A DNA stretch of 64,000 bases, taken from NCBI RefSeq assembly GCF_000143415.4, contig NW_003314314.1:873771-937770 (forward strand), in the 5' to 3' direction. Position numbers and translations under genes: made by a program. Numbering within the stretch: position 1 is the first letter of the stretch; each line of letters begins with the position of its first letter. The notes under the pieces were generated by a model. That model searched no databases, was not told the origin of the DNA, and saw only the letters and a program-made list of their open reading frames with translations. Source of the stretch: Selaginella moellendorffii. Lineage: Eukaryota; Plantae; Lycopodiophyta. Of the stretch, positions 11,116 through 50,744 are shown one piece after another.

Positions 11116-11385
11116 CTAGTACTTAGAAGTTTCTTCTGGCAGTGATGGCTTGATCTTGAGCTTGAGAGCGTTCCGGGCTGATAGAGCCAGCTCTTTCTCC
11201 GCGCCGCTGAGGCACCGGCCATAGCTGCGAAGGTAGTAAACGCAGCTGCGATGGCAAGAGCAGTCATCGTCACCGAAGCAGTAGTGGACACTCTCCTCCC
11301 GAGCTGCTGTTTGGACTGAGAAAATGAGGAAGATCGCCACGACCAACATCGAGATCTTGACCATCCTAGCCTTCAACATCGCCAT
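11116..11385 (-). CDS. Small secreted cysteine-rich peptide, copy 1
   Basis: Signal-like hydrophobic N-terminus followed by HYCFGDDDCSCHRSCVYYLRSYGRC. Paralog differences are largely synonymous in this frame. Confidence 0.75.
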   Translation of the reverse strand: MAMLKARMVKISMLVVAIFLIFSVQTAAREESVHYCFGDDDCSCHRSCVYYLRSYGRCLSGAEKELALSARNALKLKIKPSLPEETSKY

Positions 11386-12019
11386 TCCTGGTGGAAACCT
11401 TCTCCCTGGAAAGAAGAAAGAACAAGAGAGGCTCGCTCGAAGTTCACACTAATCTTCTCCTTCGAAACTCTCGAATCAAAAAGAAAGAAAGAACACTCTC
11501 TACTTTTATGGTCCTAGTGGTGTATCCACCGCATCAAAGCACCAAAACTGTGGATCCTGGGAAGAAACTTTCACCTGTTCCAGAGATTTAATACTCTTCC
11601 AGCCGAGTAATCGTCTTCCAGCTCAAGAGAAATCTCTTGACAGGTGCTGCAAGAAGACAAAAGAAAACGATGTGTCACACTATAGTCTTTGCAGGCCGTC
11701 ACAATCTATGCTAGCTCCACGCTGTTCCGAAGTTTTCCAAGAGCTCGAGATATTTGGCTGGGCGATAAGGAAATCTTCGGGGAGTTAAGTTTGCGTTGCT
11801 TTGCTGGTTGGATTTGGTCGCTTCGATTTTGGGAATTCACAGAAGGAAAACATTACATAACTTAAAGTAAGCAAAAACTCAAAGATGTTTCCAGTGAAGA
11901 ACTTCCTTGTCGCAAGTTCTCTCATCCGTCGTGGACGCTTCCATTTGCGTGTGTAGCTCTCTCCATAGAAAGTTCAGCGGTACGGCAGAGCACTGAAATT
12001 ATGTTAAGTGACGGCGTCT

Positions 12020-12330
12020 CTCTTGTTTTCTGCTGCACTGTAGCTTTGCAGCTGCTGATCCATTCCCTGCATATGTCCTGGCCAGTCTTGATAATCCTCC
12101 GTGACTTGTTGAAAACCAAACATGCGTTCTTCTTCGAGTGACAGTAAACCAGGATTTGGCTGCTCGACTTCTAATTCTTCGTCTTGCTCGACAATCCTTA
12201 CATCATCCATGGCGGCGATGCAATGAAAAGAAGGACCATCTCTTCCGAGCTCTAGATCAAAGTAGCCATGAGATTCCAGAAATCATCACCTAGGAAACAA
12301 AGCCACGTTGAGTTCATTGTGGAGATTCAA
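12020..12330. repeat. Diverged dispersed repeat, homologous to ~44830-45120
   Basis: Shared blocks agtcttgataat.ctccgtgactt, gaaggaccatctcttc and gtagccatgaga occur at both sites. Confidence 0.7.
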
Positions 12331-12629
12331 ATACAAAAACCTGGACTTACTTCACAGCAATATGCTTGAAGCCGTACTTAATCCAAATAACATCAAACTA
12401 TTCCCAGAGTGCTGCTTGCCTGTAGAGACGTTCACAATGCTGTGAGCTTCTTAATTTCTATTCAAGTTGTTAAAATATTTAATATCCTAAGCATAATATA
12501 GTTGTTATAATTTTTTTTATAATAAAAGAAAAACCTACATTTAATTAACGTTATCAACTCAGTAAAGGAGAAGGGATTTAGTGTTTGGTCAACTCTACTC
12601 TCTCCCCTCTAAAGTCAGAAGTTTTGGCT

Positions 12630-14057
12630 ATGGCGCTGGAGTCTTCCAAGATCACAGTGACCAACATTTGCTTGGTTTCTCCAAGTTACAGCCCGGAGAA
12701 TGTCGATCTCTTGGAGAGGAAGAAGCAAATGCGTCTCTGTGCTGCATCTCATATGATTTGGTTCGTGCCTTACAGGACTCGCCTTCTCTTCTTCCGAAAG
12801 CCTCCTCCCCATCTCTCCTTCGAGGCCATTGTAGCAAATCTCAAGAGTTCTCTTGCCAAGGCGCTGGTGGAGTTTTATCCCCTGGCAGGGAGATTGCTAG
12901 TGAGTGACAGCGAGAATGGACTGCGGATGGATGTGGTTTGCAATGACAAAGGCGTGCTCTTCATCGAAGCCAGTGCTACTGGAGTTACTGTTGAGGAGCT
13001 CGCAAAGGATGAAGTGAGTGGTCATTTCGAGGGGATTCCAGCAAAACTAGTGGAAGATCTGGCACAATGTGGAGACTACGATATATCGACAATTCCATGG
13101 TCCTTCGATGCTCCTCTGTTCATCATCCAGGTACTTCAATATATATTCGCATTGATAATCAAGTCGAATCGAATGTAGGTGACAGAGCTTTCTTGTGGAG
13201 GCATTTGCATCTCCGTCAAGTTCAATCACCAGCTTTTAGATGGAGCTGGGACCTGGAACTTTGTCAAGTCATTGGCCGAGGTCTGTTGTGGTAAATCTAT
13301 GTCACTCAAGCCCGTGGTCGTGGAAACTCCACCATGCATTGCAGTCTCGGACGATCATCCCACAGATTTTGAGCTTCCAGCAGGGTTTGGAAGGGCCTGC
13401 AACGCGGATTTACTGAAATTAAGCACCAAGTCAACATCGCAGTCCGCGGAGTATGACATGAAGTGCTTTGCATTCAAGAAGGAGATGATCCAAAAGATGA
13501 AGCTCGAGAATCCAGGGTTCAGCTCGTTCCAGCTTCTCACGAGTTTCATATGGTCCAGAGTTAACGCTGCGAGAGATCTCAAGGATGACGAAACCACTAC
13601 TCTTGTGTTTGCAGCAAACTGTAGAGGACGGATCAAGACTGTGCCGAAGGGATTCGTAGGAATGGCCGTGGTGTATGATCACGTTTCCACCAAAGTCTCG
13701 AGCCTACGAGCTCAGGGAAATGAGCTGAGAAATGGGGCGGATCTTCTCAAGAAAAAGATCGGTGATTTGCTCACGGAGGAAGGCGCGGGTCTCTACTCAA
13801 AGGCTGTGAGCAGTGGCGACAGGGGCTTCACAGCTTTTCCTCAATCTAAGATGGAAACAGCATTGATCGTTGGAAGTTCGTTCTACTTCCCGGTTTTCGA
13901 GGACTTTGGATTTGGAAAGCCGGTTGGAATGACGCTGGTTCGTCCTTCTGATGATAGCAAGCTATACTATTTCCCAGGGAAGGAGGAAGGTGATGTGGTA
14001 GCTTATATTGGGCTCACAAGTCACGCGATGAGAAAGCTTAGTTTTCCACAGGTTTGA
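12630..14057 (+). CDS. BAHD acyl-CoA acyltransferase, copy 1 (intron 13131-13178)
   Basis: LKSSLAKALVEFYPLAGRL, CNDKGVLFIEA, catalytic HxxxD (HQLLD), DFGFG (DFGWG motif), and the conserved intron after Q. Confidence 0.93.
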
Positions 14058-14099
14058 AACAATATAAAGTTGTCTCTTTGCCCTTCACCGCGGGACGGC

Positions 14100-14860
14100 A
14101 TGGAGATCGAGGCGAGGATCTTCGAGACAGATGTTTCTGATGGTACTGTGATTGTTGACATGCACGGAAGCTCCAGATAATGGGTCGGGCCATCTTGGCT
14201 TTTGGCTGGATCAAGGAATGTTGTCTCCTTGACTGCTATGTTCTCAGAATTTGCCGGAATGGGCATTACAGAGACGCTCTCTCGAGCTCTGGAGCTCCTC
14301 CATGGATTTGGAGGGAGTCAAGTCAAATGGCTTGCCATTTTTTTTTTTCCTGGAAGCCTGCGCCGGTCCCGGGAATAGAATCTGCTGTAAAATTTTCCAC
14401 TCCCGAAATCGAGGGAATGGAGCTTATGCGCTGGGGAAATGCGGTCACGTTGCGCGATGATGGCGGCGTATGCCCAAAACGGACAGCACAGGGAAGCGCT
14501 CCGAGTCTTTAGCGAGCTCGACACGATGCTGGATCGCGAGCGTCTTGGAGGCGTCCTCAAGTTTGGCCAGGCTAGAATCTCGGATCCTTGCTAGTGGAAT
14601 TCGCGTGAGCGTGATCGTGGTCGTCATCACTTACAGAAAGTGTGGAGCTCTCAGCCTCGCGAGATCCACGTTCAATGGCCTGTGCTGGAACACGATGATC
14701 TCCGCCAACTTGCAGCACAGCAACGCCAGGAAGTGCTCAAGCTCTTCAACGAGCTCAAACAAGCCGGGACTTTGAGCGAGCACTTGGGGGGCTGCATGAT
14801 CGATCTGCTGGGACGAGCTGGGGGATTTGAAGAGGCTGAGAGAGTGGTTGCTCCATGAAA
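14100..14860 (+). pseudogene. PPR protein pseudogene fragment
   Basis: Frameshifted PPR-like motifs MMAAYAQNGQHREALRVF, WNTMISA and GCMIDLLGRAGGFEEAE. Confidence 0.75.
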
Positions 14861-15432
14861 CGCAATGTCCCCTCCTGATCATGAATGTCGTCTCTCAATC
14901 ACCAAGTCCTGGATAAAACCAGGGCATGGCATTTCGTAGTTCGATATAAGCTGCGGCAAATCCCCGTCACTTGTGGTCGTGGAAACTCCCCTGGACAACG
15001 AGCAGAGCTGGAGATTTAGCTCCCGCCGATTTTTCATGCGGTGGAAGATTAGAACTTGTTCACACTATCAACGCTATGAAAAGCTTCTCGTTTGCTTCTC
15101 GTTTGCCCAGGAGTGAGATTCCACGGCAAAGAGATGGAAGACCCCGTTCTTCTCAGTCAAGTGCTGTGAAAGCTCTCCAACGCTGGAAACTATGACTCTC
15201 AGTTGGAGATGTACGCCTTCTCATGACATGAGAAGGAGTTGCCACCTCATAGATCCACGTTGGCTGGAGTTGAGTAGATCAGAGCCACATTGTCCACACG
15301 ACGCTTCCGCTGTGTTTTGACACTCTCGAGACTGTCATGTTCAGGACGGCCTCCATGGACATGCAAGCCACCTCTATATGAGCCATGACTACAGCGCTCT
15401 AGGCTCGCCTCTGTCCCACCGTCATAGGTCTT

Positions 15433-15654
15433 CTAGATCCTTTTGGGTATGTCCTTGAGAGCGTTCCTGGCTGAAAGATCCAGCTCTCTCTCCTCGCCAC
15501 CCAGGCACTGGCGATAGCTTCGAAGGTAGTAAACGCAGCTGCGATTGCAAGAGCAGTCATCGTCACCGAAGCAGTAGTGGACACTCTCCTCTCGAGGTGC
15601 TGTTTGGACTGAGAAAATGAGGAAGATCGCCATCGAGATCTTCATCTTCGCCAT
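15433..15654 (-). CDS. Small secreted cysteine-rich peptide, copy 2
   Basis: MAKMKISMAIFLIFSVQTAP-REESVHYCFGDDDCSCNRSCVYYLRSYRQC, an intact paralog. Confidence 0.7.
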   Translation of the reverse strand: MAKMKISMAIFLIFSVQTAPREESVHYCFGDDDCSCNRSCVYYLRSYRQCLGGEERELDLSARNALKDIPKRI

Positions 15655-16861
15655 TCCTGGTGGAAACCTTAAGCGAGAGCACGAAACTCTCGAAGTTCAC
15701 ACTGCCTGGTCCTTAGAAACTCTCGAATCGAAATGAAAGAACAAACACTCTTTACTTTTATGGTGTATCCACCACATCCAAGCACCGAGAACCTTTCACG
15801 TGTCCCAGCGATTCACTACTCTTCCAGCAGTGTAATCGTCTTCCAGCTCAAGCAGACACATGACAGGTGCTGCAAGAAGACAAAAGAAAACGATGTGTCA
15901 CACTATAATCTTCTATGCTAGCTCCACGTTGTTCCTGAGTGCCTCCGATAAGTTTGCGATGGATAGAGCACCGTAGCTCTGCTGCTGCTAATCCATTCCC
16001 TGCATATTTGGAGGCAGGTTCGAAAAGAGAAGATAAGCTGAAGCTTGAGATTGCTAACCACTAGCCCCACTTATTGCATTAAGTTGCAATAAAATGGCTT
16101 CAATTGATATTTGTAACTAAATTTAAGACACAATAGTTTTATATTAGAAAATTATAAATTCTTATTTACGTAATTTATAATAGTTATAAACAAAAATTTT
16201 TTTTTGTAGTTTTGACCAGAAAATATGTAATTGTTATGTTTAGTTCTTATTTATGACTCCAAAAAACAAAGTTATAAACATAGTGGTAAAGATGGGAATT
16301 TAAGTCATTATTTATGATGATATTTAAAAATAAATAGTTTTCTATTCTAATTTATTGCCAATCTTTGATTTTGGAGTTACATTTTTTCCTATTTTAGAAG
16401 CTTAAAGGTGCTCTTGATAAATATTATCTAGGTTGTGGTGAATGAATGTAAGTATATTTTATTTATGTCAGTTTGATTACTTTATATTATTTGTTGTTTC
16501 ATATTTGCTAGCTTTTCTTATAAGAGAATGCATACAATCACCCACAGCAATGGAATTTACGAGGAACTCATCAATATTCAGGATTTCTTTTATAAAACGT
16601 TCATGGTAATGGATTTAAATGAAAATTTTCCTTTAGTTTATCTCATTTGTCATTACTCTATGTTATAAAAAATGGATACAACCACCTTCTTTATTTTCTT
16701 AAGCCAAGCCCAATCTTTAACCCATTTAGGGTATAATACTCTTAATGCTTTTCGCAACTCTAAGTTTTCCTCCAAGAAAAATTTATAAGATAGGTAAAAC
16801 CCTAAAATCACCAGGGAGAAAACTAAAGGCGTAGGATATACTCTACATTTAATTAATGTTT

Positions 16862-18810
16862 TGGTTACCAACTTTGTCCTTCCATTCGTCTTGAAAATAC
16901 TTGATAAAAGGTACTTCATTTTGAAAATCCACCTCAAAATGTTCAATAAGTTGTTTAATCTCAACTCACATAATATTATCATCATGAAAAGTTGCATGAA
17001 TTGAATGATACATAATATTTCCAAAACGTTTCCATATTTCCATCTTAATATCCCAAGATTTCACTTTACGAATAATATATTTGAGCCAATTCCTTCTTAC
17101 ATGCCAAATACATAATAGAATTTGACAATCAAATGTAGCTCTATATAGAGGAAAACAATTAAATTATTTCATATCAAATTAATTACCTTATAACATTAAT
17201 CTTTGTTTCAGCATCATCAATCATTATTGCCCGTAGTTTCCAATTTGGCATATGTTCTCAAACTTATTTTTTAAAAGTTATTATCCAATTCTTCATATGT
17301 TCTCCTTTCTCACTAGAAGTTAAAACCCATGCAATTGGAATACCATTTCTATGATAATCAAAAGTAAGCATGGTGTATAATGGGAACTATAAATTATTAA
17401 GTATTAATCACTTAAAACTGAATGAAAATTTTACCTTGTAGCGATTAATTCCAAAAGTTGCGTCAAGACTCAATAGATTATTATTTGAAAAGTCCACCAT
17501 CTTTTGTAGTTGCCAAGTTGTTTGGATCCCAATAATAAAACAATCTTTACCTCGATCACCTCTTGATAGAAAAATACTTTCTCAGGATTTGTGTTCTTCC
17601 AAATATGTACACTCTATGCGTCATTCTTATGTAATCGATAAGTTGAAAGTGAATACTTCCTATGCAAATTGTTGATATCCTGCATAGTTAGAAAATCATC
17701 TCGATGAGAAGGTTCACCAGCTAACTTGTTCCTTTCCACAATCTGTATATGCTCATTATAAATCTGATTTGCTATGAAATCCTGCTAAATCATATGAATC
17801 ACCCAATGTCAAATATCTGTTGAAAGCTTTTGAGGAAATAATGACTTTCCTCCAGTCAGATCAAGTTGACCATGACAAGGAACCCCATTTTTATCACAAT
17901 GCTCTCTATGATAATATATAATCTGCACATAATCAAGCCATTTGTAAAACTGTTTGACCAAAAAATTGCAAAGGCAGCCCCGCTTATTAGAACTTTGACT
18001 TGGTCTACTTCCAAGTCCTGACTTTGGTGTAGATTTAGCAATCATAATAGAGGATGTTTCACGAGCATCTTGTTTTCCATATTCACACCAATACCTGTAT
18101 CAAGAAGTTAGTAATTATATTTTGTTAAAAAAATATACCTAATTAATGATAAAAAGTTTGTATTTTTGGGTTATTTCAAATCTTTAGGATCACGATTTTT
18201 GTTAGAAAATTGCCAAAAATCCATTCCATCACCCCTTCTCCTCTCACCATCGAGAAACTTGTTCACATCCTTTTGTAATATATACACTATAGTTTCATTT
18301 GATTTAGACAAATTCCAATCTAAATCATCTGCACAAAAATAATCCCTTTCATGGAATTTTTGCACCTCATCAAGCCATGGGGGATTTTAAATGATTTTCT
18401 TGAATCAATATGAAATTAAATTGATTGCTTACCTTTGGAAATTGCTGTGCTGCTGCCATGCTTGATCATAAAAGAAACAGAAACGTTTTTAGGTCAATTA
18501 TGGAGCAACCATCCGGCGTGAATGGGTGGACCAGGGCGCGCTAATTGAAATTTGGCTTGGGGCTGTGGCCACGTGGAAGTAATTTTAGGGCGCACGCTGG
18601 GCGCGGGCGGACGTGCGGGGGCGGGTGGGAGTGCGGGCGGGAGCCGTGAGGGCGAGCGGGCGGGCGGGAGCCGCGGGCGGGAGTGTGCAGCGGCGACGGA
18701 CGGGAGAGGGAGTGCGCTGGAGATAAAACAAAAAAGAGGGCTGATGCCACGTCATCGCCAGGTAAGCGGAGAGAGAGAGAGTGAATCAGGATGGTGTTTA
18801 ACGGGAGGCT
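16862..18810 (-). mobile_element. Truncated Mutator-like element (MULE transposase remnant)
   Basis: Absent from the other units. The minus strand encodes SLDATFGINRYK, PLYTMLTFDYHRNGIPIAWVLT, DDAETKINVIR and LLCIWHVRRNW (MULE DDE-type motifs). A GC-rich terminal region spans ~18530-18810. Confidence 0.75.
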
Positions 18811-20113
18811 GATTTGGTTCGTGCCTTACAGGACTCGCCTTCTCTTCTTCCGAAAGCCTCCTCCCCATCTCTCCTTCGAGGCCATTGTAGCAAATCTCAA
18901 GAGTTCTCTTGCCAAGGCGCTGGTGGAGTTTTATCCCCTGGCAGGGAGATTGCTTGTGAGTGACAGCGAGAATGGACTGCGGATGGATGTGGTTTGCAAT
19001 GACAAAGGCGTGCTCTTCATTGAAGCTAGTGCTACTGGAGTTACTGTTGAGGAGCTCGCAAAGGATGAAGTGAGTGGTCATTTCGAGGGGATTCCAGCAA
19101 AACTAGTGGAAGATCTGGCACAATGTGGAGACTACGATATATCGACAATTCCATGGTCCTTCGATGCTCCTCTGTTCATCATCCAGGTACTTCAATATAT
19201 ATCCGCATTGATAATCAAGTCGAATCGTATGTAGGTGACAGAGCTTTCTTGTGGAGGCATTTGCATCTCCGTCAAGTTCAATCACCAGCTTTTAGATGGA
19301 GCTGGGACCTGGAACTTTGTCAAGTCATGGGCCGAGGTCTGTTGTGGTAAATCTATGTCACTCAAGCCCGTGGTCGTGGAAACTCCACCATGCATTGCAG
19401 TCTCGGACGATCATCCCACAGATTTTGAGCTTCCAGCAGGGTTTGGAAGGGCCTGCAACGCGGATTTACTGAAATTAAGCACCAAGTCAACATCGCAGTC
19501 CGCGGAGTATGACATGAAGTGCTTTGCATTCAAGAAGGAGATGATCCAAAAGATGAAGCTCGAGAATCCAGGGTTCAGCTCGTTCCAGCTTCTCACGAGT
19601 TTCATATGGTCCAGAGTTAACGCTGCGAGAGATCTCAAGGATGACGAAACCACTACTCTTGTGTTTGCAGCAAACTGTAGAGGACGGATCAAGACTGTGC
19701 CGAAGGGATTCGTAGGAATGGCCGTGGTGTATGATCACGTTTCCACCAAAGTCTCGAGCCTACGAGCTCAGGGAAATGAGCTGAGAAATGGGGCGGATCT
19801 TCTCAAGAAAAAGATCGGTGATTTGCTCACGGAGGAAGGCGCGGGTCTCTACTCAAAGGCTGTGAGCAGTGGCGACAGGGGCTTCACAGCTTTTCCTCAA
19901 TCTAAGATGGAAACAGCATTGATCGTTGGAAGTTCGTTCTACTTCCCGGTTTTCGAGGACTTTGGATTTGGAAAGCCGGTTGGAATGACGCTGGTTCGTC
20001 CTTCTGATGATAGCAAGCTATACTATTTCCCAGGGAAGGAGGAAGGTGATGTGGTAGCTTATATTGGGCTCACAAGTCACGCGATGAGAAAGCTTAGTTT
20101 TCCACAGGTTTGA
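18791..20113 (+). CDS. BAHD acyltransferase, copy 2, 5'-truncated; possible start codon inside the MULE end (intron 19187-19234)
   Basis: Nearly identical to copy 1 from 18810 onward. The first ~41 codons are missing and the in-frame ATG at 18791 lies within the insertion. It may be a pseudogene. Confidence 0.7.
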
Positions 20114-20155
20114 AACAATATAAAGTTGTCTCTTTGCCCTTCACCGCGGGACGGC

Positions 20156-20917
20156 ATGGAGATCGAGGCGAGGATCTTCGAGACAGATGTTTCTGATGGT
20201 ACTGTGATTGTTGACATGCACGGGAAGCTCCAGATAATGGGTCGGGCCATCTCGGCTTTTGGCTGGATCAAGGAATGTTGTCTCCTTGACTGCTATGTTC
20301 TCAGAATTTGCCCGGAATGGGCATTACAGAGACGCTCTCTCGAGCTCTCGAGCTCCTCCATGGATTTGGAGGGAGTCAAGCCAAATGGCTTGCCATTTTT
20401 TTTTTCCCTGGAAGCCTGCGCCGGTCCCGGGAATAGAATCTGCTGTAAAATTTTCCACTCCCGAAATCGAGGGAATGGAGCTTATGCGCTGGGGAAATGC
20501 GGTCACGTTGCGCGATGATGGCGGCGTATGCCCAAAACGGACAGCACAGGGAAGCGCTCCGAGTCTTTAGCGAGCTCGACACGATGCTGGATCGCGAGCG
20601 TCTTGAAGGCGTCCTCAAGTTTGGCCATGGCTAGAATCTCGGATCCTTGCTAGTGGAATTCGCGTGAGCGTGATCGTGGTCGTCATCACTTACAGAAAGT
20701 GTGGAGCTCTCAGCCTCGCGAGATCCACGTTCAATGGCCTGTGCTGGAACACGATGATCTCCGCCAACTTGCAGCACAGCAACGCCAGGAAGTGCTCAAG
20801 CTCTTCAACGAGCTCAAACAAGCCGGGACTTTGAGCGAGCACTTGGGGGGCTGCATGATCGATCTGCTGGGACGAGCTGGGGGATTTGAAGAGGCTGAGA
20901 GAGTGGTTGCTCCATGA
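20156..20917 (+). pseudogene. PPR pseudogene fragment (unit B)
   Basis: Near-identical to 14100-14860. Confidence 0.75.
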
Positions 20918-21639
20918 AACGCAATGTCCCCTCCTGATCATGAATGTCGTCTCTCAATCACCAAGTCCTGGATAAAACCAGGGCATGGCATTTCGTAGTT
21001 CGATATAAGCTGCGGCAAATCCCCGTCACTTGTGGTCGTGGAAACTCCCCTGGACAACGAGCAGAGCTGGAGATTTAGCTCCCGCCGATTTTTCATGCGG
21101 TGGAAGATTAGAACTTGTTCACACTATCAACGCCATGAAAAGCTTCTCGTTTGCTTCTCGTTTGCCCAGGAGTGAGATTCCACGGCAAAGAGATGGAAGA
21201 CCCCGTTCTTCTCAGTCAAGTGCTGTGAAAGCTCTCCAACGCTGGAAACTATGACTCTCAGTTGGAGATGTACGCTTTCTCATGACATGAGAAGGAGTTG
21301 CCACCTCATAGATCCACGTTGGCTGGAGTTGAGTAGATCAGAGCCACATTGTCCACGCTATGTTTTGACACTCTTGAGACTGTCATGTTCAGGACGGCCT
21401 CCATGGACATGCAAGCCACCTCTATATGAGCCATGACTACAGCGCTCTAGGCTCGCCTCTGTCCCACCGTCATAGATTTTGTTTTAGTGCAGACAGGGTG
21501 TGACTGGCGGAGTCTTCTAGATCCTTTTGGGTATGTCCTTGAGAGCGTTCCTGGCTGAAAGATCCAGCTCTCTCTCCTCGCCACCAAGGCACTGGCGATA
21601 GCTTCGAAGGTAGTAAACGCAGCTGCGATTGCAAGAGCA

Positions 21640-24600
21640 TGTAGGAATAATGATGAACACGACAAGTAAAACGATTCATATCAGAAGCAGTCCGAATTGT
21701 GATCAGATCTCTGGTGATTTCCGATTTGATTGAAGTTGTATATATATACAGCCATATATGAATCAATGGGTGGGTTGAAGTGAAATCCATTCTTCTTGCT
21801 CCGCTTTTCTTTCATGGTATCAGAGCTCAGTTTCTGAACTCTTTCTTCTCCTTTCTTTGTGCCTCACATCATGAGCTGCAGCAAAGTTGGATTGATCTTG
21901 CTTCAGGGAGTCACTGCCTTTGATGGGAGGAGAGGGTTCAACACCTGGTCTGAGAAAATGATGCGCATGCTGCAGATGGAAGAACTCTGGGAAATCGTTT
22001 CACCACCGACAATCGCTGCAGATGCTCGTATGCGGCAAGCCCCTGCTGCATTGGGAGCTTCAACTTCGGTGGAAGGAGAAGTCGTGGATGAAGAGGCAAT
22101 TCGTGCCTTTGTTGCAGCAGCTTGACAACAGCTTGATCCAGGGGAACAAGCTGCGCTGGAGAAGAAGGAATCTCGAGCAAAAGGATTGATTCTTTCTAAG
22201 CTTGCAGATGCCCTTATGATGCGTTTGCGTCATAAGAGTGCTTGTGAGATCTGGGCTCATCTCCACAACAAGTATGCTGTTCTTTCCCTCTCCAAGATCA
22301 GCACGGTCGAGACTTGCATTCATGAGACCCATTTTCATCCAGGCGAGAACTTTGAAGAGTTCCTCGCCAAGATGCAAGATTTGTGGATGGAGCTTGAAGG
22401 CAGTCCAGCGGCGTTCAACGAAAGCAAGAAAGTTCTGGCACTTTGCGAGGCCATGCAAGATTCTTCTTTTAGTTCTTGCATCCCACACATATCATCGAGG
22501 CAGAGGAGGCCGCGGAAGAGGAGGACAAGGCAGAGGTTGCGGGTTTAGGGGAAATCCGCAGCAGCAGCAGAATTCAGGGAATTCTGGTAAAGAAGCAGTA
22601 GTTCGGGATTGTTTTGTGGGCAAGAACAAACAGGAATGCTGGACCTGTGGGATGCCAGGACACTACTCCAAGGATTGCCTAGTTGCAGCTTGGCTGCAAC
22701 GCATGAACATAGGGCTCGCAGCAAATGCTCAGGAAGGGGAAACACGGGAACTTGCGGCATCATCTGAGGTAGCAGTTCCAAACGTTTTTGAAAAACTGAC
22801 CATTGATTCAGGTTCAGAGAGACACCTGATGCAAAGCGGGTCGAACTTTGTGCAGTTGCGTACTGCAAAAGGGAAGTGCATTCGTGTGGGAGATAGAAGC
22901 ATTTTACCTATTTGCACAACTGGGGATGTGCGAGTTCCACTGGGAAGAAAGTCTTTGCTCTTGAAGAATGCATAGTATGTTCCAAAGATAGTGAAGAATC
23001 TGATTTTTGTAGCCAAGCTTACGGATGAAGGTCTGGATGTGAATTTCTCCAAACATCAATGTCAAGTTCTTGCAAATGGTCGTCCATTACTGCATTTTCC
23101 CATATGTGGTAACTTGTTTGAGAAGGAGATAGCTTTTGGAGAAAAATCAAACGCGAGATATGCATGACTGCAGATAGTTCTCTCTGGCATTCTCGATTTG
23201 CACATGCCAATCCCCCTCTCATCAGGTGTATGCAGAAGCATGAGCTTGTGGATGGCTTCAACGACCACGTTCTTCAAAGTTCAGCAAAATGTCACACTTG
23301 CATTCTTGGCAAGCAAACCCGTTGTACTTTCAAACCTGCTGTGATCAGAAGCACTCGTCCCTTGCAGCTCATTCACTCAGATGTTTGTGGACCCATGCAA
23401 CTGTTTGCTCAGAATGGCACGAAGTATTTTGTGACGCTTACAGATGATTTCTCAAGACACACGGACGTCTTCTTCTTCATCACAAAGATGAAGTCTTCAG
23501 CAAATTCAAGCAATTCGTAGCAGAAGCCGAAGTGAAAACTGGTCAGAGGGTTGGCTGTTTACATATTGATTCAGGAGGTGAATATGTCAAGCAGTTCTGT
23601 GCTAAATGAGGAATTCTTCATCAGTGCTCTTGCTCTTATACCCCTCAACAGAATGGAGTCTCTGAGTGCAAGAACAAGACAATCATGAATGCAATTCAGT
23701 GCTTCCTTCAAGAATCAGGACTACCAAAATTCCTCTGGGCTGAAGCAGTCGGATTAGCTGTGCACATTCAAAACCTTCTCCCTCATTCTCGCAATCCCAA
23801 CAAGATCCCAGAAGAGCTTTGGACTAGTCAAAGACAATCAGTGGTGCATCTCAAGTGTTTTGGTTGTTTAAGCTTTGCAAAAAGGGTGGATGAGCATCTC
23901 GATAAGTTGGAGAGCAGAAGCAAGCTGGCCTTTCTTGTTGGATACGATTCCAATTCAAAAGGATATTGCATATACTAGCCTGGTAATCATCAAATTTCTG
24001 TAAGCATGTAAGCTCCTAAGTTTAGACTTCTTGGGAGGTCACCCAGCCCAATACTATTCAAACCCAAAGACGCTTAACCCCAAATATCCCAAGACCCTTA
24101 ACCGATTGGAAAAGGGGGTGCACTCTTATTCATGAGCCCTTTCCCTCTATATTTGAACCCTTATGGATCGTCTCTCGAGTTGTTCCCTTTGGTTGTTTAC
24201 AAAGCACTGATGTTCATTTTGATGAATGAACACTCTACAAAGATCATGTTCAAGAAGAAGGAAGCTCAAATCAAAATATGAACTAGACTCCGGAAGAATG
24301 GAGTTGGGATGGTGTTGAAGACGATGATGAAGATGACGATGATTTAACAATCATCTATCCCTCATCTCCTTTAGCAGACGATTCTCCAACAACAGTCTCT
24401 GGATCTTTTCTTCTTGAAGAACAAGGCAATGCTGCTCATTGTGCATGAACTGGAGAAGTCGACAGGCTCACACGTGATCTACCATTCAATGTGGAGAACT
24501 ATGGGTGGACATCATCTGGACGATCAAGCAGAGTACCTCATCCCAAGCAATAGTCTTTTGCAGCAATAGAAATAGCTTCTAAACCAGTCAACTTTGAGCA

Positions 24601-29097: not shown

Positions 29098-29137
29098 AAC
29101 AATATAAAGTTCTCTTTGCCCCTCACCGCGGGACGGC

Positions 29138-37845: not shown

Positions 37846-39238
37846 CGTCGCCCTCTACGTCCCTGGAATCCGTGGCAATGTAGGCCCTGAGTCCATTAGC
37901 TCGCTCGGGCGGGAGCATGAGAGCTAGCGCATTTGGAGCTTACCGGCGAGCGCCATTCGCTCCACTCCAGAGCCACGAGCCCTAAAACACAGAGAAAACA
38001 TTATTTCTCGATTCTTTGGGAAAGAAAGTTCTCGTCTATCGACGACGAGGATTTGAAGGTACTTAAAACGTTTTCTTCCATCGGGTGAGCCATCACTAAA
38101 CCCTAGAAACCCTCTAAACCTCGAGCAATATAAAAAAAAGCCCTTTAATGGATATGGTCTAAAGAATTTCCAGAAAGATCTTTTCGTTTCTCCTACGGCA
38201 TAGTACCACACTCGATGATTTCACGTGAAACGAATATACTCTCTTTGCTTTGTTTTGCGTATCCCCGTTCTTCGTCGCGGATGTTCTAAACCGAAAAAAA
38301 AGAAAGAAAACCACGAGAGAATCAAGTCAATAACATTGACGTGTTCTCTTCCAGGAAATGTACCTCCCAAGTCGCTGCCATGAAAGCCAGTCCCCCGTAC
38401 CGCAAAAAAACTCTAAGCAAATCCCTCCACCAAAAAGCTGTCTAGCCCGCTGTGGATGAGCTCGAAACCATCCAAACAAAGCGACCGCGCCTGAATCCGG
38501 TGCCGCCGCACGGCGCTGGGGTTCCATCCTCATCCGACTGCATGATCAGGTTTGTCTCTCCGGATCTTGCTTTAATCCTCTTTTCTTTTCTTTTCTTTTT
38601 TCTTTCTTCTGGCAAGATGGAAGAACCTGTTGGCAACAGCGACCAACGCCGTGGATGTGATAACATTCGACTATCCCTGTGGGTCTTCTTTCTTATTATT
38701 TTTCTTCTTTCTTGGAAGATCTTGTTAGTTTTCTAGTTAAATGACATACTCTGTTTCCCCTAAATCATTTTATCCATGTAAATATATAGGAGGCGCATTT
38801 TTGCGGACTAAAATCCATTCAAGATCGAGAATTTGAGAGCATGTAATTAAATCGTTGTTATTGTAAAATTCTAGACTCGGAGACGCTCCGAGTGAGAGAA
38901 CGAGCTGCTGCTTGGCATTCTTACCTGGCCTGTGCTCAACCATCGGACGACATACGAAACTTGTACAGCTTGTCTAACGCGTGTGCTTTGCTAATTGCCT
39001 ACAAAAACAATTACCTTTACAAAGCAAAAGCAAAAGAAAAAGAAAAAGATTTGGCATGATTGATGCCACTTTGTACAACGTGCACCGTAGGTCAGAGTTG
39101 GCATCTGATTTCATGTTTAAAGCCAAGCAACATGCCAAGCCTCTGACTCATCTTTGCTAGCCACTTCCAAGTTGTCATTTGGATGTTGATTCATCAACGA
39201 CATTTGTTGTAATTTCTGAGGGTATTCCATTGGAAGTT

Positions 39239-40200
39239 ATGGGGGAGCCAAAGCAGGCCCGGATAGATGATTACGAGGATTTGCCAAGCATTCGCTTGGA
39301 GATGTGCAACCATGAGGTGTTGACTGTGGAGCTGAAGGAACAGAGATATAGAGCAGCAAAATTCGCTTCAGAAAACATCAAAGGCTTGCGCGAGCTGCTG
39401 CTGCAGGTGGACAACACTCTGGAGCACGTAATCCTGTGTAGCAATGGCTACCACAAAGTGGAGGGGTTTCTAGAAGCAGCTGTGTCCAAGCTAAGCAGCC
39501 TTGGCCTTTTCTGGAGAAAAATTTGGCGCGTGGCTGAGTCGCAGATTGGATCATGAAGTGATTCTCAGCTTGGATGATGCTATTGCTGCTGCCAAGCACA
39601 AGCGGATGCCAATCAAGCTCAAGACGCTTTTTCTATATCACTGTGACGTAGATTTAAATGCTTTAGCAGGATCAATCAACACTTCGAAAGTATTTAGAAC
39701 GTCTGGAGCTTTATAATTGCCCTTGCTCGCCCAACCTGGAGAAGCTGCTGCAAGATCCAGCCTGCAAGATCTGGGAGCTGTCCCTCACTAAGAATGAATA
39801 CTTGACCCCTGCCCTCTTCCAGCCTCGAACAAGTCTACGGAAGCTAACGCTGGACAACATCCCAAATGATCAGGCGCTACTCAGCCAAATCTGCGGATCA
39901 ATAGAAGGCCTTGGAGTTTAGCCATGAGGAGATCTCCCTGCTGGCAGATTGCATAAACAACAATGCCAAGTCCAAGCTCTGGTTCCTGACATTTGGATTT
40001 ATCTTTCGCGCAGCTCGTGGGCCAGCTGCTGAAGAGCCCATATTGCAAGCTTGAAAGTTTCTCCTTGTTACCTGGGGTAAAGGTGAGTGGTTTTTTCAAC
40101 ATGCTCGTCTTGATATTGACACTGATTTTCTTAAGCAGAATGAAAGCCTCTCCCCGCGTGAGTACCAGGAGTATCAAGATGCGATTCTCAGCAGTTTGAA
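39239..40200 (+). pseudogene. Truncated, frameshifted copy of the Roco LRR region
   Basis: Paralogous to 32187-33120 and ends before the Roc domain. Confidence 0.88.
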
Positions 40201-40220: not shown

Positions 40221-40400
40221 CTTGGTAGTTCGTTCTACTTCGAGGACTTTGGATTTGGAAAGCCGGTTGGAATGACGCTGGTTCGTCCTTCTGAGGATAG
40301 CAGGCTATACTATTTCCCAGGGAAGGAGGAAGGTGATGTGGTAGCATATGTTGGGCTCACAAGTCACGCGATGAGAAAGCTTAGTTTTCCACAGGTTTGA
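40221..40400 (+). pseudogene. BAHD 3' fragment, copy 4
   Basis: LGSSFYFEDFGFGKPVGMTLVRPSEDSRLYYFPG...SFPQV*. Confidence 0.9.
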
Positions 40401-40439
40401 AACAATATAAAGTTGTCTCTTTGCCCTTCACCGCGGGAC

Positions 40440-41186
40440 GTGGAAATCAAGGCGAGGATCTTCGAGACAGATGTTTCTGATGGTACCGTTATTGTTGACA
40501 TGCACGGGAAGCTCCAGATAATGGATCGGGCCACCGCGGCTTTTGGCTGGATCAAAGAGAGGAATGCTGTCTCCTTGACTGCTATGTTCCCAGAATTTGC
40601 CCGGAATGGGCATTACAGAGACGCTCTCGAGTTCCTCCATGGATTTGGAGGGAGTCAAGCCAAATGGCGTGACATTTATTGTCTTTCTGGAAGCCTGCGC
40701 CGGTCTCGGGGATAGAATCTGCCGTAAAATTCTTCACTCCCGAAACCGAGGGAATGGAGCTTGATTTCTTCGTCAGAAATGGTGGTCTCGGCTTATGCGC
40801 TGGAGGCTTATGCGGGCGACAGCACAGGGAGTCTTTTGGGAGCTCGATCTCGAAAAACACGAGCGCCTTCGAGACGTCCTCAAGTTTGGCCATGGCTAGA
40901 AGCCTCCACTCTCGGATCCTTGCCAGTGGAACGCGTGAGCGTGATCGTGGTCGTGACCACTTACAGAAACTCTCAGCCTCGCGAGATCCACGTTCAATGG
41001 CCTGTGCTGAAACACGATGATCTCCGCCTACGTGCAGCACGGCAACGCCAGGAAGGGCTCAAGCTCTTCAACGAGCTCAAGCAAGCCGGGGAGCGGCCAA
41101 ACAGCATCACTTTGAGCGGCTGCATGATCGATCTGCTGGGAGGAGCTGAGGGATTGGAGGAGGCTGAGAGAGAGGCTGCTCCATGA
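40440..41186 (+). pseudogene. PPR pseudogene fragment (unit D)
   Basis: Near-identical to 29138-29884. Confidence 0.75.
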
Positions 41187-41971
41187 AACGCAATGTCCTC
41201 TCCTGATCATGAACGTCGTCTCTGTGAACTTCAATCACCAAGTCCTGGATAAAACCAGGGCATGGCATTTCGTAGTTCGATATAAGCTGCGGCAAATCCC
41301 CGTCACTTGAGCAGGTGGTTGTGGAAACTCCCCTGGACAACGAGCAGAGCTGGAGATTTAGCTCCCGCCGATTTTTCATGCGGTGGAAGATTAGACTTTG
41401 TTCACAACTTCTCACTATCAACGCCATGGAAGGCTTCTCGTTTGCAAAGCAGGTGATTGGGTTGCCAAGGAGTGAGATTCCAGAGCTCCTCACGGCAAAG
41501 AGATGGAAGACCCCGTGTTCTTCGCGGTCAACTGCTGTGAAAGCTCTCCAACGCTGGAAACTATGACTCTTAGTACGCTTTCTCATGACATGAGGAGTTG
41601 CCACCTCATAGAACCACGTTGGCTAAAGTTGACGAAGGCAACGATATATCAGAGCCACATTGTCCACACGACACTTCCGCTATGTTTTGACACTCTCGAG
41701 ACTGTCATGTTCAGGACGGCCTCCAAGCTACCTCTATATGAGCCATGACTGTCCACACTATGCTTCCACTGTGTTTTGACATGGTATCGGCCTTGAGGGC
41801 GTTCCCTCTTGGATGCTGAGCGCTGCTATTGCACAACATCAGCACCTCCGCCTGTGTGCCCAGCGCCCAGCGTCAAGCACGCCTCTGGTACAGCGCTCTA
41901 GGCTCGCCTCTGTCCCATTGCCATAGATAGATCTTGTTTTAGTGCAGACAGGGTGTGACTGGCGGAGTCTT

Positions 41972-42193
41972 CTAGATCTTTTTGGGTATGTCCTTGAGAG
42001 CGTTCCTGGCTGAAAGATCCAGCTCTTTCTCCTCGCCACCGAGGCACCGGCGATAGCTTCGAAGGTAGTAAACGCAGCTGCGATTGCAAGAGCAGTCATC
42101 GTCACCGAAGCAGTAGTGCACACTCTCCTCTCGAGCTGCTGTTTGGACTGAGAAAATGAGGAAGATCGCCATCGAGATCTTCAACTTCGCCAT
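41972..42193 (-). CDS. Small secreted cysteine-rich peptide, copy 4
   Basis: MAKLKISMAIFLIFSVQTAA-REESVHYCFGDDDCSCNRSCVYYLRSYRRC, intact. Confidence 0.72.
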   Translation of the reverse strand: MAKLKISMAIFLIFSVQTAAREESVHYCFGDDDCSCNRSCVYYLRSYRRCLGGEEKELDLSARNALKDIPKKI

Positions 42194-45190: not shown

Positions 45191-45261
45191 GCAGACAAGG
45201 TGTGACTGGCCGAGACTTGGATCAAGAGGATGGAGTCTTCTAGATCTTTTTGGGTATGTCC
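45191..45261 (-). pseudogene. 3' remnant of the cysteine-rich peptide gene
   Basis: Encodes the DIPKKI* end and shares the 3' flank of copy 4. Confidence 0.7.
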
Positions 45262-45414
45262 CTGCTCTCTATTTAGGTGTGGATCACGCCCTGTGACGTG
45301 ATCAGAGAGCCTTGTGTGAGGCGTCACCTTAAGAGGGGGACGGGATGAGGATGGAGAGGCTTTAGAGAGGGAGACTTCCAGTGTTTCGACCACAACATTT
45401 TCATATCTGATTAA

Positions 45415-45556: not shown

Positions 45557-45844
45557 CTCAAGGCTGTCATGCTCCAGATGGCTCCTACAGTGTGATAATA
45601 TAGTATGTCGTTTGGTAATAAATTGTCATAGATATTGCAAGCTTCTGCCACTTGGAAAGTCTTGGAATACCTATGAAAGGAGCTCCGATAAGACCCTTGG
45701 CAACAGTCAAAATCCAACCAATTTGGAGTCCACTGGCTCTAGTAACTTTCTCCTTGGAGCTTCCTGTTTCCAATAGAAGAGAGTAAATCTTTTAATATGA
45801 AGGTCTAAATCCAGATGTTATGAGCAATTTTTCCTAGGAAAAAA

Positions 45845-46249
45845 ATGTATTCAAAATTCTTATCTATTTCTATTTTCTACTGTTTATTTTGTAATTGTTA
45901 TTCAATAGAAATGTTTATTTATAATAGACTAGGTGGTGACATTGATTTATCTTGTGACTCTGAATCTAATGATGTAGTTGGTCCAAATATTATAGCTGAT
46001 AGAAAAAGTTTACATTTTAGTTTTGGAACACGTTGGGATTTTGGTCGAACTCAATTTTGGTGTCGTTTAACTAATATGAATGCGCAAGTATCAAGAAATT
46101 TTAATGTTTATACACAAAATAGTAATGAAGATTATGAAGAAGCCTTAATTATAGAATATTATGTATTTGATTATGGAATTTTTGAAACTCACATACATAA
46201 GAATAAAAAATTCTGGTCTCTACCTCAGAGAAAGCCTTCTCCATTCTAG
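45845..46249 (+). CDS. S-protein homologue (plant self-incompatibility S1/SPH family), secreted
   Basis: Signal peptide followed by IYNRLGGDIDLSC-S-D-G, FSF..WDFGRTQFWC, FNVY and YYVFDYGIF, the typical SPH pattern. Intact 134 aa in AT-rich DNA. Confidence 0.82.
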   Translation: MYSKFLSISIFYCLFCNCYSIEMFIYNRLGGDIDLSCDSESNDVVGPNIIADRKSLHFSFGTRWDFGRTQFWCRLTNMNAQVSRNFNVYTQNSNEDYEEALIIEYYVFDYGIFETHIHKNKKFWSLPQRKPSPF

Positions 46250-49200
46250 CTATTTAAAATAATGGCTTTATGTAATATTTTATTAATATTTATTTTTGTG
46301 AAAAAAATCATATATTATAATTTTAATAGTTGTAAACTTTTTCATTGATGAGTATTCTCTATTTTATATTTTCTTTGTTTTCTTTAGAAAGCTTGTGGGG
46401 GACAGGTGTAATAAATAATTTTAGAAAATCTATATATATTCTAAGATAATTCAATAAAATTTGTTGTGATTTTTACATAAAATTTATACTCTAAATATTT
46501 TTTAATCAGATTTTAATCCTTACTTATAACTAGAAAATGGAACTATTGATTTACTTGCAAAGCTTCATCTTAACTTCATTATATTTTCATCAAACACACC
46601 TCAACTTTATTCCATGCTTCTACATTTCCACCATTATAATCAAACTTGCCCAAAAAGAGTGGATGACACTCTTTACATTTCTGACTTAATATTTATTTAC
46701 TAAAACACTTAGAGAAGCTTTAGGAGTAATAACACACTAATTAAAGTAAAAAAAAAACTATTCACACTTTATAGACTAACACCATTCCCTACAGTAGCAA
46801 GTCATGTTAGTGCCATGGACCCCTCCCTTGACAAAATAATCCTTCTTTGTGTTGTGGTAGGAGGAAGTAAACTTTTAACAATCAATAAGTTCTAGATTGG
46901 ATTAAGTGTCTCTTACAACTCAGTTGAATTTAAGTTTAATCTCACTCTACCCCCTCCCACACCACACTATTTTCATCCTTAGTAGCATAGAGAGCAGAAC
47001 ATATTGTGCTAAACTATCTATGATGTGATCTATCTCTTGAGGGGAAACAAAGGCTACTATATGTGTTTCTATGGATTAATAATCTAGTTTTTTTTAGATT
47101 AATTTATAAGTTTAAAAATAGAAATTGATATCAAAGATATTAAATAGTCTATAAATTATGTATTAAACACCAACATAACTTAATAGTAGGATTAAGATTT
47201 TTTACTTTTAATATTTAATCTAAATTAAAATAATTTTTTTATAAAATATAATATTTCTAAGACTTGGATATTTAAATTTCAAAATACATAAAGCAAACCA
47301 AGTGTTGCTGCTAGCATAATAAAGTTTTTCCATAAATCAAAGTAAAGAATTCTTAATAAGTTAGCTTTCTATTTAAATCAAACATTCTTTTTGTATGTGT
47401 ATATCGTAGATTTATTTATTTTTTAAGAAATTTTTAAAGATTATATACCCTTGAATATTAAAATGTGTCTATATATGGTAAGTACAAGTTTACAAAGATC
47501 TTTCCAACTTTGAGAATTGAATAAACAATGCCTTCTACATCTAAATGTGTTGGTAAGAAATCTTTTGCACTAGTTAGACTTTATGCTCACTTATAAAAGT
47601 CCAATTGTGAAATCTATGGTAGATTAAGTATAGAAACTGGTCTAAGCCCTTGTTTATTCTTATCTTTACAAATGTATTAAGCTATAATTTTTATTAAATA
47701 TATTAATCTAAGTGCATAAAAAAGAACTTTCCTCACACCAATTGGGTTTAGGGAATAGCACAAGCAAGATATTGTGCTGATCTTGATTCATCCCATTAGA
47801 AGTTACTATGGTGATTCCAACCTCCAGTCATAGAAAATCAATATCTAATTCAATAGAGGAAAGGAAGAGAGGAAAATATGTTTTTTATAGCATGGTTGTA
47901 ATTGAATTTTGAATAGAAAACTGCAAAAGGTGCTATAAATTGTAATGAATTTAGACTACTTTTCTTCAAATATAAATTATATATTGGAAATATAGTTTTA
48001 GAATTATAGTTGTTATAGTAGTTATTACATTCAAAAAATAAATAAAAACCATACATGCTATATCCCAATGAAAGGGTAGTGAACATCTATAGTTTTTTAA
48101 AAAAATTTACAAATTAACTATATATAAGAGGGTGATAGGGTTTCTTATGGATGCTAAGTGTGAGAGGATACTCATGGAATTTGGGTTGGTAGTACAATAC
48201 AACCATCATTTGAAGGTGATGCCAAATATCACTCCAGTAAAGTCTTGTGATAGTAGTAACCATCCTCCTAAAGATTTGGTGGCTGTGGGCATACTCGTGG
48301 CTATCTATTGAATGAAGAAAAAGAATGTTGAGGTCAATATTAAGTCTTTCTATCCATTTCTTGCAAGCATGCCACCATCCAAAGTCTTGAGTAGTCACTG
48401 TTAAGAATCATGATTTAAAGATCATGCTAAACCTTAGGTTCAAGCTTAGGCAACATAGGTTAGTACAGATGCACTAGCTAAGATAGCTACCATTATTTTT
48501 ACCATAAGCTTACCTATAAGTCATGATTTCTTTCTAGATTTTAAAGATTTTTCTCTATTCAAGTTCCTCCATTTGTCTTGCTTTGGGTTAGTCCTGACAG
48601 TTTAATTCAATTCCCTTGAGTCATTTGAGGCTCTTGTATGCTCTTGATCTTTTCTTCTTTTTGACCAAGATGCCACCATAGTCAGCTTTAGGTTCTGTGG
48701 CTCAACAGCATGATAGTTGCATCTTTGTGGTTCTGATCTCTAGATCTACAGCACAAGGGCTATAATTTCTTTTTCTTTTCCATTTTGTGGTGCCAAGATT
48801 TTAGTGGCTACATCTTCTGAGTGTGGCATTAGATTGTTTTATTCCTCAACTTGTTGGAAAGTTGTGGATCTCCTCCTTTTTTGACGAGCTCAAGTGCACT
48901 CAATATTCTAGGAGTTATGATTGTTTGTGTTGCAACATGTTGCCTTGGTTTTCTTTTAGTCCAATCTGCAACAAAATAGCTGCAATTTTTCTTCACTAAA
49001 CTTCATTTTTCTTCTTGCATTTTTTTGGCAATTTTTTTGTGTATCTTGTTTGTGATCCTCCTCCTTTCTTAGCTCTATCAGAACTAGCATCAATTCAGGT
49101 GTGGGCACAATTTGAGAAAGGAGGGGGATAAGTAGCTAGGAAGATACTAATAAGGAACAAAGATGAATGGCCAATAAAACCAACCATAAGTGATTCATCA

Positions 49201-50462
49201 TACTAGCAAAGGTTGGTCTAGAATGAATGAAGGGAACTTGAAGGGGTACCTTTGCAAAAAGAAATTCCTAGTTCTTCTTCTCTTTCACTCAAGCATAGGC
49301 AGACAAAACTAAGTCACTATGGCTTAATCCCCTTGTCCTTAAAGAGAGGTAGATATTATCAGGAATTCTACTTTAAACTCAAGCTTAGGCTTAGGTTTAG
49401 ACTCATGCTAAGGTCTATATCAGTCAAGCTTTAGGCAAAGGACTTAACCATCCTGGCTAAAGATAGATACCATTATTTTTACCAATAGTGATGGCTAATC
49501 TAAAATGTAGTGTAGTATATAAGTTAAGACCTTATTTATAATATACTTTTTGCACCAATCATGGCTTTTTTCTAGATCTCAAATCTTTCTGTGTATCTAT
49601 AGGTTCTAGTGAGGAGTCTTGATAATTGCAAATTGACACATCATTCCAAAGTATCCCTCCATATTTAGAATTCTTCCCACAATGTGATTTCCATTGGGAA
49701 TAGCCTTGTATCCAGACCATAGATCTCACAAGAATGGATGTCAAAGTCTTGTTGGAAAAACATTTGATTTATTTACTAGCTTATTTGAGGTTGGCTTAAC
49801 CATAGAGTAGAACCGGAGTGACATTTGAGATACTGTTAATTGACAGTTATCTTAGTAGTAGTTTCCCTTTTATTGGAGTTATATTTCTATTCATGGATTT
49901 TTATTTTTTATATTTAAATCTCATAGATTTTACTCAAGTTGTTATTTTTAATTGTTTATAACAAACTTCACACCCTCGTGAAAGAAGTTAATAATTGCTC
50001 TCTCTCTCACACACACAAAGGACATTGTCAATCTCAAGATATCCCTTAATTAAATAGAATTAGAGGTTTAGACCTTTTTTTATATAAAATGTAAACTTTT
50101 TAGTTAAGACTTTGTGGCACTTCCTTCAATATTGGAATTACATAGATTTTTTAAAACTATTCCTTTTAGTTACTTCAATCTAACATCTACACTAAGTAGG
50201 CCTAAGGCTGTAAAGAGTCTAGGTAATCTTTGTGGATGGACATTGACTTTTAGAGATGAAATTAATTTAGGAATTTAATCTAGTTAATTGGAAGTTTTTA
50301 AATGATATATTTATGTCTGAATTCGCTAGTCTAGAATCCCGGTTGAGACATTTTTTACGAAAACATTTTTTACTTGTATTCCGCACCCGGGGAATTACAG
50401 ATCTGGGCACTCTAAAGAGCATACTTCACAGATCTCAAATGTGGATAACAGTCGAAGGACGT

Positions 50463-50744
50463 CTAGTATTTCCCAAGATCTGGCAGCGGTGACTTGATCT
50501 TAAGCTTGAGAGCGTTCTTGGCCAATAGAGCCTGCTCTTTCTCCACGCCGCTGAGACACCGGCCATAGCTTCGAAGGTAGTAAACACAGCTGCAACCGAC
50601 AGAGCACTCATCATCCCCAAAGCAGTAGTGGACACTTGAGATGTTTTCTTCTCGAGCTGCTGTTTGGATTGAGAAATAAAGGAAGATCACCAGTATCAGA
50701 ACCAACATCCACATCGCACTCTTCCCCTCCTTAAACTTGGCCAT
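50463..50744 (-). CDS. Small secreted cysteine-rich peptide, copy 5 (most divergent)
   Basis: MAKFKEGKSAMWMLVLILVIFLYFSIQTAA-REENISSVHYCFGDDECSVGCSCVYYLRSYGRC. The upstream region 50940-51060 is homologous to 11606-11730. Confidence 0.75.
   Translation of the reverse strand: MAKFKEGKSAMWMLVLILVIFLYFSIQTAAREENISSVHYCFGDDECSVGCSCVYYLRSYGRCLSGVEKEQALLAKNALKLKIKSPLPDLGKY

Follow-up and report, generated by a model that had tools for sequence, protein, structure and literature searches.

What is encoded by the short, mutually similar open reading frames (ORFs) that recur on the minus strand of one stretch of the genome of the lycophyte Selaginella moellendorffii? The stretch, referred to below as the window, comprises 64,000 nt (assembly GCF_000143415.4, contig NW_003314314.1, positions 873,771 to 937,770). 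An initial annotation of the window had proposed a family of secreted five-cysteine peptides resembling a squash-type knottin that lacks its first cysteine. In lycophytes, the lineage sister to the remaining vascular plants, small secreted peptides have hardly been charted, since annotation pipelines pass over them. Here we report that the recurring ORFs are probably real, single-exon, lineage-restricted S. moellendorffii genes for small secreted-type Cys-rich peptides with a previously undescribed cysteine framework. The initial annotation was right in recognising a secreted-peptide family under selection; the descent from knottins is unsupported.

Gene copies, transcripts and reading frame

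The similarity among the copies is not a matter of chance, since tblastn comparisons between them gave E-values of 1e-24 to 1e-45 in the 64-kb window. Four intact copies (c1, c2, c4 and c5), a Copia-split copy (c3) and one remnant had been described, and all were found, all on the minus strand (Table 1). The alignments also confirm the claimed signal-like N-terminus, C-x5-C-x5-C-x9-C core and charged tail across the copies. The signal peptide was judged by inspection of n-, h- and c-region features: every copy has a basic n-region followed by a hydrophobic h-region (10-residue Kyte-Doolittle maximum 2.5-3.7), and every copy has a QTA[AP]/REE junction with small residues preceding REE. The shared core reads SVHYCFGDD[DE]C...SCVYYLRSY..C and is followed by the charged tail; the most diverged copy, c5, carries an extra NIS after REE. 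The start codon of c1 lies in a good context, with a purine at -3 and G at +4; its leader contains one upstream ORF of 6 codons. The precursor features of the generic plant secreted Cys-rich class are thus present, namely a precursor of 73-93 aa, signal-peptide features and five Cys in a short mature region.

A search of sequencing runs with words taken from c1 listed 20 runs; in 16, no fewer than half of the words were present, and the runs with c1 words came from 7 studies. Contig totals of 13-57 Mb in these runs suggested RNA. Contigs of four runs from four studies were aligned to positions 10300-16200 (5,901 letters). These four runs are RNA, because their contigs skip introns of the neighbouring genes (10508/10569, 10726/10785 and 13128/13177, the last a 48-nt GT..AG intron) and the intergenic interval 11679-12466 is covered by none of them. 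The interval 10785-11667, which contains c1 and its leader, is covered in all four at a depth similar to that of the cwf21-domain gene next to it. The contig of this neighbour stops at 11033 in run X2, apart from the separate contig that covers c1 (Table 1), an arrangement that fits two convergent transcripts. The c1 block reaches 282 nt upstream of its ATG, and weaker contigs aligned on the c2 region reach a nearly equal distance, 284 nt upstream, to about 15938. As the two copies have different neighbours, this agreement is consistent with transcription starting at a site of the peptide gene's own. At the site equivalent to 15502, the run X2 contig that lies over the c2 coding sequence (CDS) bears the base specific to c4, and it was assigned to the c4 type, not to c2; the 3' flank specific to c3 (21469-21498) also occurs in RNA of the same run, in a contig, and type-B copies (defined below) are therefore transcribed as well. 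Transcription is strong for c1 and weak for the c3/c4 type, and an absence of transcripts, which would have told against the family, was not encountered.

The reading frame was examined with Nei-Gojobori estimates of omega (dN/dS) on an ungapped block of 44 codons, with about 28 synonymous and 103 nonsynonymous sites. Omega was 0.25-0.38 in frame 0, with Fisher p-values of 0.02-0.05 for pairs with c5 and for c1-c4, and the two remaining sense frames gave 0.5-1.8; all antisense frames contain stops. The purifying selection suggested initially is consistent with these values, which are not near 1. Comparison of c1 with c5 from the REE motif through the last Cys gives nine synonymous third-position changes, exactly the number first counted, and four replacement codons, three of which lie in a CHR to VGC cluster; VHYCFGDD and SCVYYLRSYGRC are unchanged between the two, again as first noted. 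Insertions and deletions in the CDS are all multiples of three (6, 9, 24 and 30 nt), and those in the leader measure 8, 8, 29, 7, 1, 18, 12, 44 nt and similar. Between c1 and c5 the core aligns gaplessly at 86% identity; identity is 68% in the leader, where 127 columns are gapped, and no better than random in the 3' flank. An otherwise invariant Gly is lost only in the transposon-disrupted c3. All coding tests agree in direction and together they amount to moderate, not overwhelming, evidence that the frame is coding.

Two other sets of ORFs were considered. Plus-strand ORFs in the leader (e.g. 11391-11591 and 15733-15921) were rejected as genes because indels between copies break their frame. 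Overlapping GTG-started ORFs in the +1 frame of the minus strand are open in all four intact copies (Table 1); they too were rejected as genes, their omega being 1.3-1.8 in pairs with c5 (0.5-0.7 in c1-c2 and c1-c4), and this frame is probably a by-product of composition.

Cysteine framework, database matches and alternative explanations

The mature part of every copy contains exactly five Cys, with none upstream of the first. Four of them are fixed with the C-x5-C-x5-C-x9-C spacing. The initial annotation held that the fifth is always present but moves, and the alignment of c1-c4 with c5 agrees: it is found in CSC[HN]RSC in c1-c4 and in CSVGCSC, two residues later, in c5. The full spacing is thus C-x5-C-x1-C-x3-C-x9-C in c1-c4 and C-x5-C-x3-C-x1-C-x9-C in c5. 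The move corresponds to the CHR to VGC cluster, which comprises five substitutions within 9 nt. That the fifth Cys was shifted rather than lost suggests that it matters, and a shift of two residues would leave it on the same side of an extended chain. A possible but rather doubtful extension is that the fifth Cys is functionally required, forming an intermolecular disulfide in a covalent homodimer or a link to a partner, and that the family represents a new lycophyte-specific scaffold with a thiol-based action. A homodimer prediction gave a score of 0.02, which counts neither for nor against binding.

A profile of the four precursors was searched against 1.84 billion representative proteins and returned one true match (P0001; EFJ16652.1, D8SGA3, SELMODRAFT_445160); a second match, an Ig-repeat animal protein, was spurious. 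EFJ16652.1 is a 283-aa S. moellendorffii model whose last 93 residues are c5, and this is the only form of c5 in GenBank. Its N-terminal part belongs to a protein conserved in streptophytes, about 190-230 aa long. In RefSeq the model of this upstream neighbour (P0003, 215 aa; no encoding contig is on record for it) reads on without c5, and since members of that family measure about 190-230 aa, the fusion of c5 to its neighbour is almost certainly an artefact of early annotation, judging from the models compared. The exact sequences of c1, c2 and c4 are absent from a collection of 15 billion proteins, GCA_000143415.2 has no gene call at c4, a homologous-protein search with c1 gave no candidate, and Rfam gave no match in the window. 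Literature searches returned no description of a five-Cys Selaginella family. The PlantSSP catalogue screened annotated proteins only and would necessarily miss an unannotated family such as this one. As far as the searched databases show, the family appears restricted to Selaginella.

With the signal peptide removed, the mature peptides had no match in Pfam at E<=10. Searches with whole precursors gave matches below threshold to Nodulin_late (PF07127; c1, E 4e-4, 21.0 bits; c4, 15.8 bits; none for c2 and c5; cut-off 30.4), to AtDEF-like (PF25052; c1 only, E 0.02, 15.5 bits; cut-off 25) and to DUF3551. The Nodulin_late match vanishes without the signal peptide and therefore came from it. A sequence-profile search of the PDB gave no matches at E<=10. 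With low-confidence structure models, Foldseek against the PDB gave no matches, a wide VIA search reached Z 2.7 at best, with unrelated zinc-finger-like domains, and an atlas fold search gave only unrelated bacterial proteins at TM<=0.5. In the language-model search of the atlas, where scores below 0.9 were taken as leads only, the best score was 0.86 for unnamed bacterial clusters, and conotoxin, albumin-1, late-nodulin and spider-toxin clusters scored 0.78-0.82, below that reliability mark. The statement that the family was not recognised, and the absence of a match to a transposable element, are thus borne out for the mature peptide in Pfam, the PDB and the 1.84 billion proteins.

The similarity to squash-type knottins requires separate treatment. 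The claim that the spacing matches from Cys II onward stands for c5 and fails for c1-c4, and kinship with these knottins found no backing, as no knottin was matched in Pfam at E<=10, whether the signal peptide was kept or removed, and nothing in the PDB by sequence or fold. A derivative of a knottin without Cys I, in which the fixed Cys would form the II-V and III-VI bonds and the mobile Cys would be an orphaned Cys IV, is improbable. The C-x5-C-x3-C-x1-C-x9-C spacing of c5 is that of squash Cys II-VI, the acidic xDD[DE]C segment is present, AlphaFold2 (AF2) predicts a small three-stranded sheet, and albumin-1 and spider toxins are language-model neighbours at 0.78-0.81, below the mark. However, four of the five copies have C-x1-C-x3-C instead of C-x3-C-x1-C, there are five Cys and not six, no knot can form without Cys I, and short spacing matches easily arise by chance among Cys-rich peptides. 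Squash inhibitors carry the protease-inhibitory loop on the segment from Cys I to Cys II; that segment is missing here, where REE(NIS)SVHY directly precedes the first Cys. Distant membership of the defensin-like superfamily, including the cysteine-rich peptides specific to nodules (NCRs), is less credible still and must be regarded as very improbable. The CxxDxDC motif resembles NCRs, and the late-nodulin cluster reached 0.80 in the atlas search, but the Pfam scores of c1 lie under both cut-offs and disappear without the signal peptide, the number and spacing of Cys differ, the cysteine-stabilised alpha-beta pattern of defensin-like peptides is absent, with none of the five Cys in the predicted helix, and NCRs are limited to certain legumes. 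We regard it as extremely unlikely that the product is a Cys/His metal-binding module of zinc-finger type (a beta-hairpin plus helix) and not disulfide-bonded: five Cys and an invariant His (VHYC) could supply ligands, and the top fold matches, very weak, are zinc-finger-type domains, but Z does not exceed 2.7 with a model of low confidence, the helix offers no ligand residue, and the hydrophobic signal-like N-terminus points to the oxidising secretory pathway.

A different alternative is that the ORFs are untranslated, their RNA being non-coding or read-through from a neighbour, and that they persist because the duplicates are young. The contig data carry no strand information, so that the minus strand of the c1 transcript is itself deduced, and the c1 block is joined to the convergent cwf21-domain gene in three of the four runs, so that part of the signal could be read-through; c2, c3 and c4 are 96-99% identical with equally conserved flanks, a second frame is open throughout, and the genes are unannotated. 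We nevertheless consider this unlikely, as the old duplicates c1 and c5 (dS about 0.3-0.5) keep the frame with indels in multiples of three and an omega of about 0.3, the core is far better conserved than the leader, the alternative frame shows the higher omega given above, and the signal-peptide architecture and five Cys are kept in all intact copies. The strandless contigs and possible read-through also weigh against our preferred explanation, genes for secreted-type Cys-rich peptides, and so do several further points. Translation, secretion and disulfides are predictions from sequence features. The selection tests carry moderate weight, with few sites and p-values near 0.02-0.05, and c2, c3 and c4 are too recent to inform them. 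No orthologue was found in other species among the 1.84 billion representative proteins, so that long-term conservation is at most conjectural. Pro occupies the expected -1 position of the cleavage site in c2 and c3, and the presumed leader of c5 holds five upstream ATGs, one of them in frame. Finally, the AF2 models, which show three short strands and a helix over the tail in both c1 and c5, are of low confidence (pLDDT, the predicted local distance difference test score, 63 and 54).

If the ORFs are genes for secreted-type peptides, as we favour, the N-terminal 20-30 residues would be a cleavable signal peptide, cut near QTAA/REE after import into the endoplasmic reticulum (ER). The product of about 53-63 residues would fold in the ER into a three-stranded sheet with two disulfides among the four fixed Cys and a helical charged tail. 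No Cys lies in the predicted helix, and the fifth Cys would remain a free thiol or form an intermolecular bond. The peptide would then most likely act outside the cell, in defence or as a ligand; binding of a target as inhibitor or ligand is preferred as a guess only. The mature peptide is near-neutral, with a net charge of -1 to +1. An amphipathic helix in the tail was considered and dropped, as the hydrophobic moment in type A is like that of shuffled sequences (0.32 in c1 and 0.23 in c5, no difference; marginal in c2 and c4). Given this charge and the lack of significant amphipathicity in the type-A tail, a classical cationic membrane-active mechanism is unlikely.

Duplication history and neighbouring genes

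The copies fall into two subtypes. Type A (c1 and c5, the old pair) has a long tail, ...KLKIK..LP...KY, and type B (c2, c3, c4 and the remnant) has a tail ending in ...KDIPK[RK]I. Homology between the subtypes ends at the NALK codons and their 3' flanks are unalignable, which places the breakpoint of the type-B duplication inside the 3' end of the CDS. Judging from these alignments, type B has replaced the ancestral 3' end with seven new codons taken from flanking DNA. About 330 nt of upstream leader and promoter are common to all copies. In self-comparison c2 and c3 sit in tandem units of about 6 kb, each with a BAHD acyltransferase gene, that are 98.6-98.9% identical, and a third unit is about 90% identical to them. 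The end of the third unit (28936-30432) recurs at 40239-41735 with 97% identity, directly before c4, and c2 and c4 are 96% identical. The family probably grew by duplication, at the DNA level, of a unit of about 0.65 kb containing promoter, leader and CDS, and further by segmental duplication along with the acyltransferase block; one copy was killed by the Copia insertion and another reduced to a stub.

The Copia-type element in c3 has two long terminal repeats (LTRs) of 175 nt with TG..CA ends and 9 differences, and the 5-bp target duplication GAGCA at its flanks. The N part of c3 carries a G to S change in CFGDDDC, the only change of the otherwise invariant Gly, and also S7L. The divergence of the LTRs is 5% (9/175, 7 of them transitions) against 1.1-1.4% for the host duplication units, which must predate the insertion; this mismatch suggests faster decay of a possibly methylated element, or gene conversion between tandem units.

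Several other genes and repeats lie in the window. The three tandem acyltransferase genes belong to the BAHD type; their 48-nt GT..AG intron is confirmed by an RNA contig, and the genes lie within the c2/c3 duplication of about 6 kb. The cwf21-domain gene is SR-related and convergent with c1; two introns of about 58-60 nt are confirmed by RNA, and its transcripts end about 40 nt from the end of the c1 transcript in one run and are merged with it in three. An ORF similar to plant self-incompatibility protein S1, a further small gene of secreted type, lies in AT-rich DNA between the remnant and c5 and is uncalled in the GenBank annotation of the stretch. A longer ORF encodes a Roc GTPase domain, and its degraded partial duplicate, 6.6 kb downstream and 85% identical, lies within a local duplication of about 10 kb situated between the third BAHD unit and c4. 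Beside each type-B copy stands a weakly transcribed block with a broken frame; one fragment of it had no Pfam match.

Table 1. Positions and properties of the features described in the window (position 1 is its first letter)
Feature	Position	Strand	Description	Evidence
c1	11116-11385	-	intact, 89 aa, type A, long tail end KLKIKPSLPEETSKY	ORF list, tblastn
c2	15433-15654	-	intact, 73 aa, type B, short tail ...KDIPKRI	ORF list, tblastn
c3, C part	21517-21639	-	Copia-split copy	tblastn
c3, N part	26327-26431	-	Copia-split copy	tblastn
c4	41972-42193	-	intact, 73 aa, type B	ORF list, tblastn
c5	50463-50744	-	intact, 93 aa from the MAKFKEG start, type A	ORF list, tblastn
Remnant	45191-45261	-	about 70 bp from a c4-type (type-B) copy: the final ~7 codons, the stop and 3' flank	blastn
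c1 transcribed block	11073-11667	- (strand inferred)	ORF, ~282-nt leader and ~43-nt 3' end	separate 596-nt contig of run X2
Copia-type LTR retrotransposon in c3	21640-26327		LTRs, target-site duplication, Gag/integrase/reverse transcriptase-like ORFs	
Copia LTRs	21640-21814, 26153-26327		175 nt each	
GTG-started overlapping ORFs	11106-11291, 15399-15584, 41839-42123, 50435-50635	-	61-94 aa, +1 frame	
EFJ16652.1 fusion model	50463-51739	-	c5 joined to upstream neighbour	
cwf21-domain gene, 3' end	9915-11033	+	SR-related	
BAHD-type acyltransferase, three tandem copies	12585-14057, 18791-20113, 27625-29097	+		Pfam Transferase, E 9e-32
Roc GTPase-domain ORF	32127-34577	+	816 aa, P-loop	PF08477, E 3e-8
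Roc partial duplicate	38775-40198		degraded	
S1-like ORF	45845-46249	+	134 aa, hydrophobic N-terminus	PF05938, E 4e-10
Frame-broken repeat block	14240-15421, 20126-21254, 29138-30261, 40413-41566	+	beside type-B copies	

Relation to known peptide families

The family is unannotated in the reference genome, and its sole trace there is the old model that fuses c5 to a conserved neighbour. No long-standing question is opened by the family alone; its value is that of a candidate for peptide discovery and of an annotation correction. Within 40 kb it offers a compact example of birth and death, with duplication, replacement of a tail, knockout by a transposon and decay to a stub.

Among known systems, squash-type knottins (PF00299) share with the family the Cys II-VI spacing of c5 and a small beta-rich core, here a predicted one; they differ in having Cys I and the Cys I-II loop, in the spacing seen in c1-c4, and in lacking the extra C-terminal helix predicted here. 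NCR peptides (PF07127) resemble the family in the signal peptide and in a mature part that opens with a CxxDxDC-like motif, but contain 4 or 6 Cys instead of five and are found in legumes, not in lycophytes. The closest likeness in kind is with plant secreted Cys-rich peptides in general, which share a short precursor, a signal peptide, tandem birth and death, and a tendency to be missed by annotation, a class described as under-predicted by Silverstein et al. 2007, as cited in PMC4526923. From that class the present family differs by its odd number of Cys, a framework found in no Pfam family, a near-neutral charge and a charged tail of about 25-30 residues that is predicted to be helical. By its sequence features, then, the known kind is that of plant secreted Cys-rich peptides and the new part is the cysteine framework, which adds an odd and relocated Cys to the plant Cys-rich peptide repertoire.

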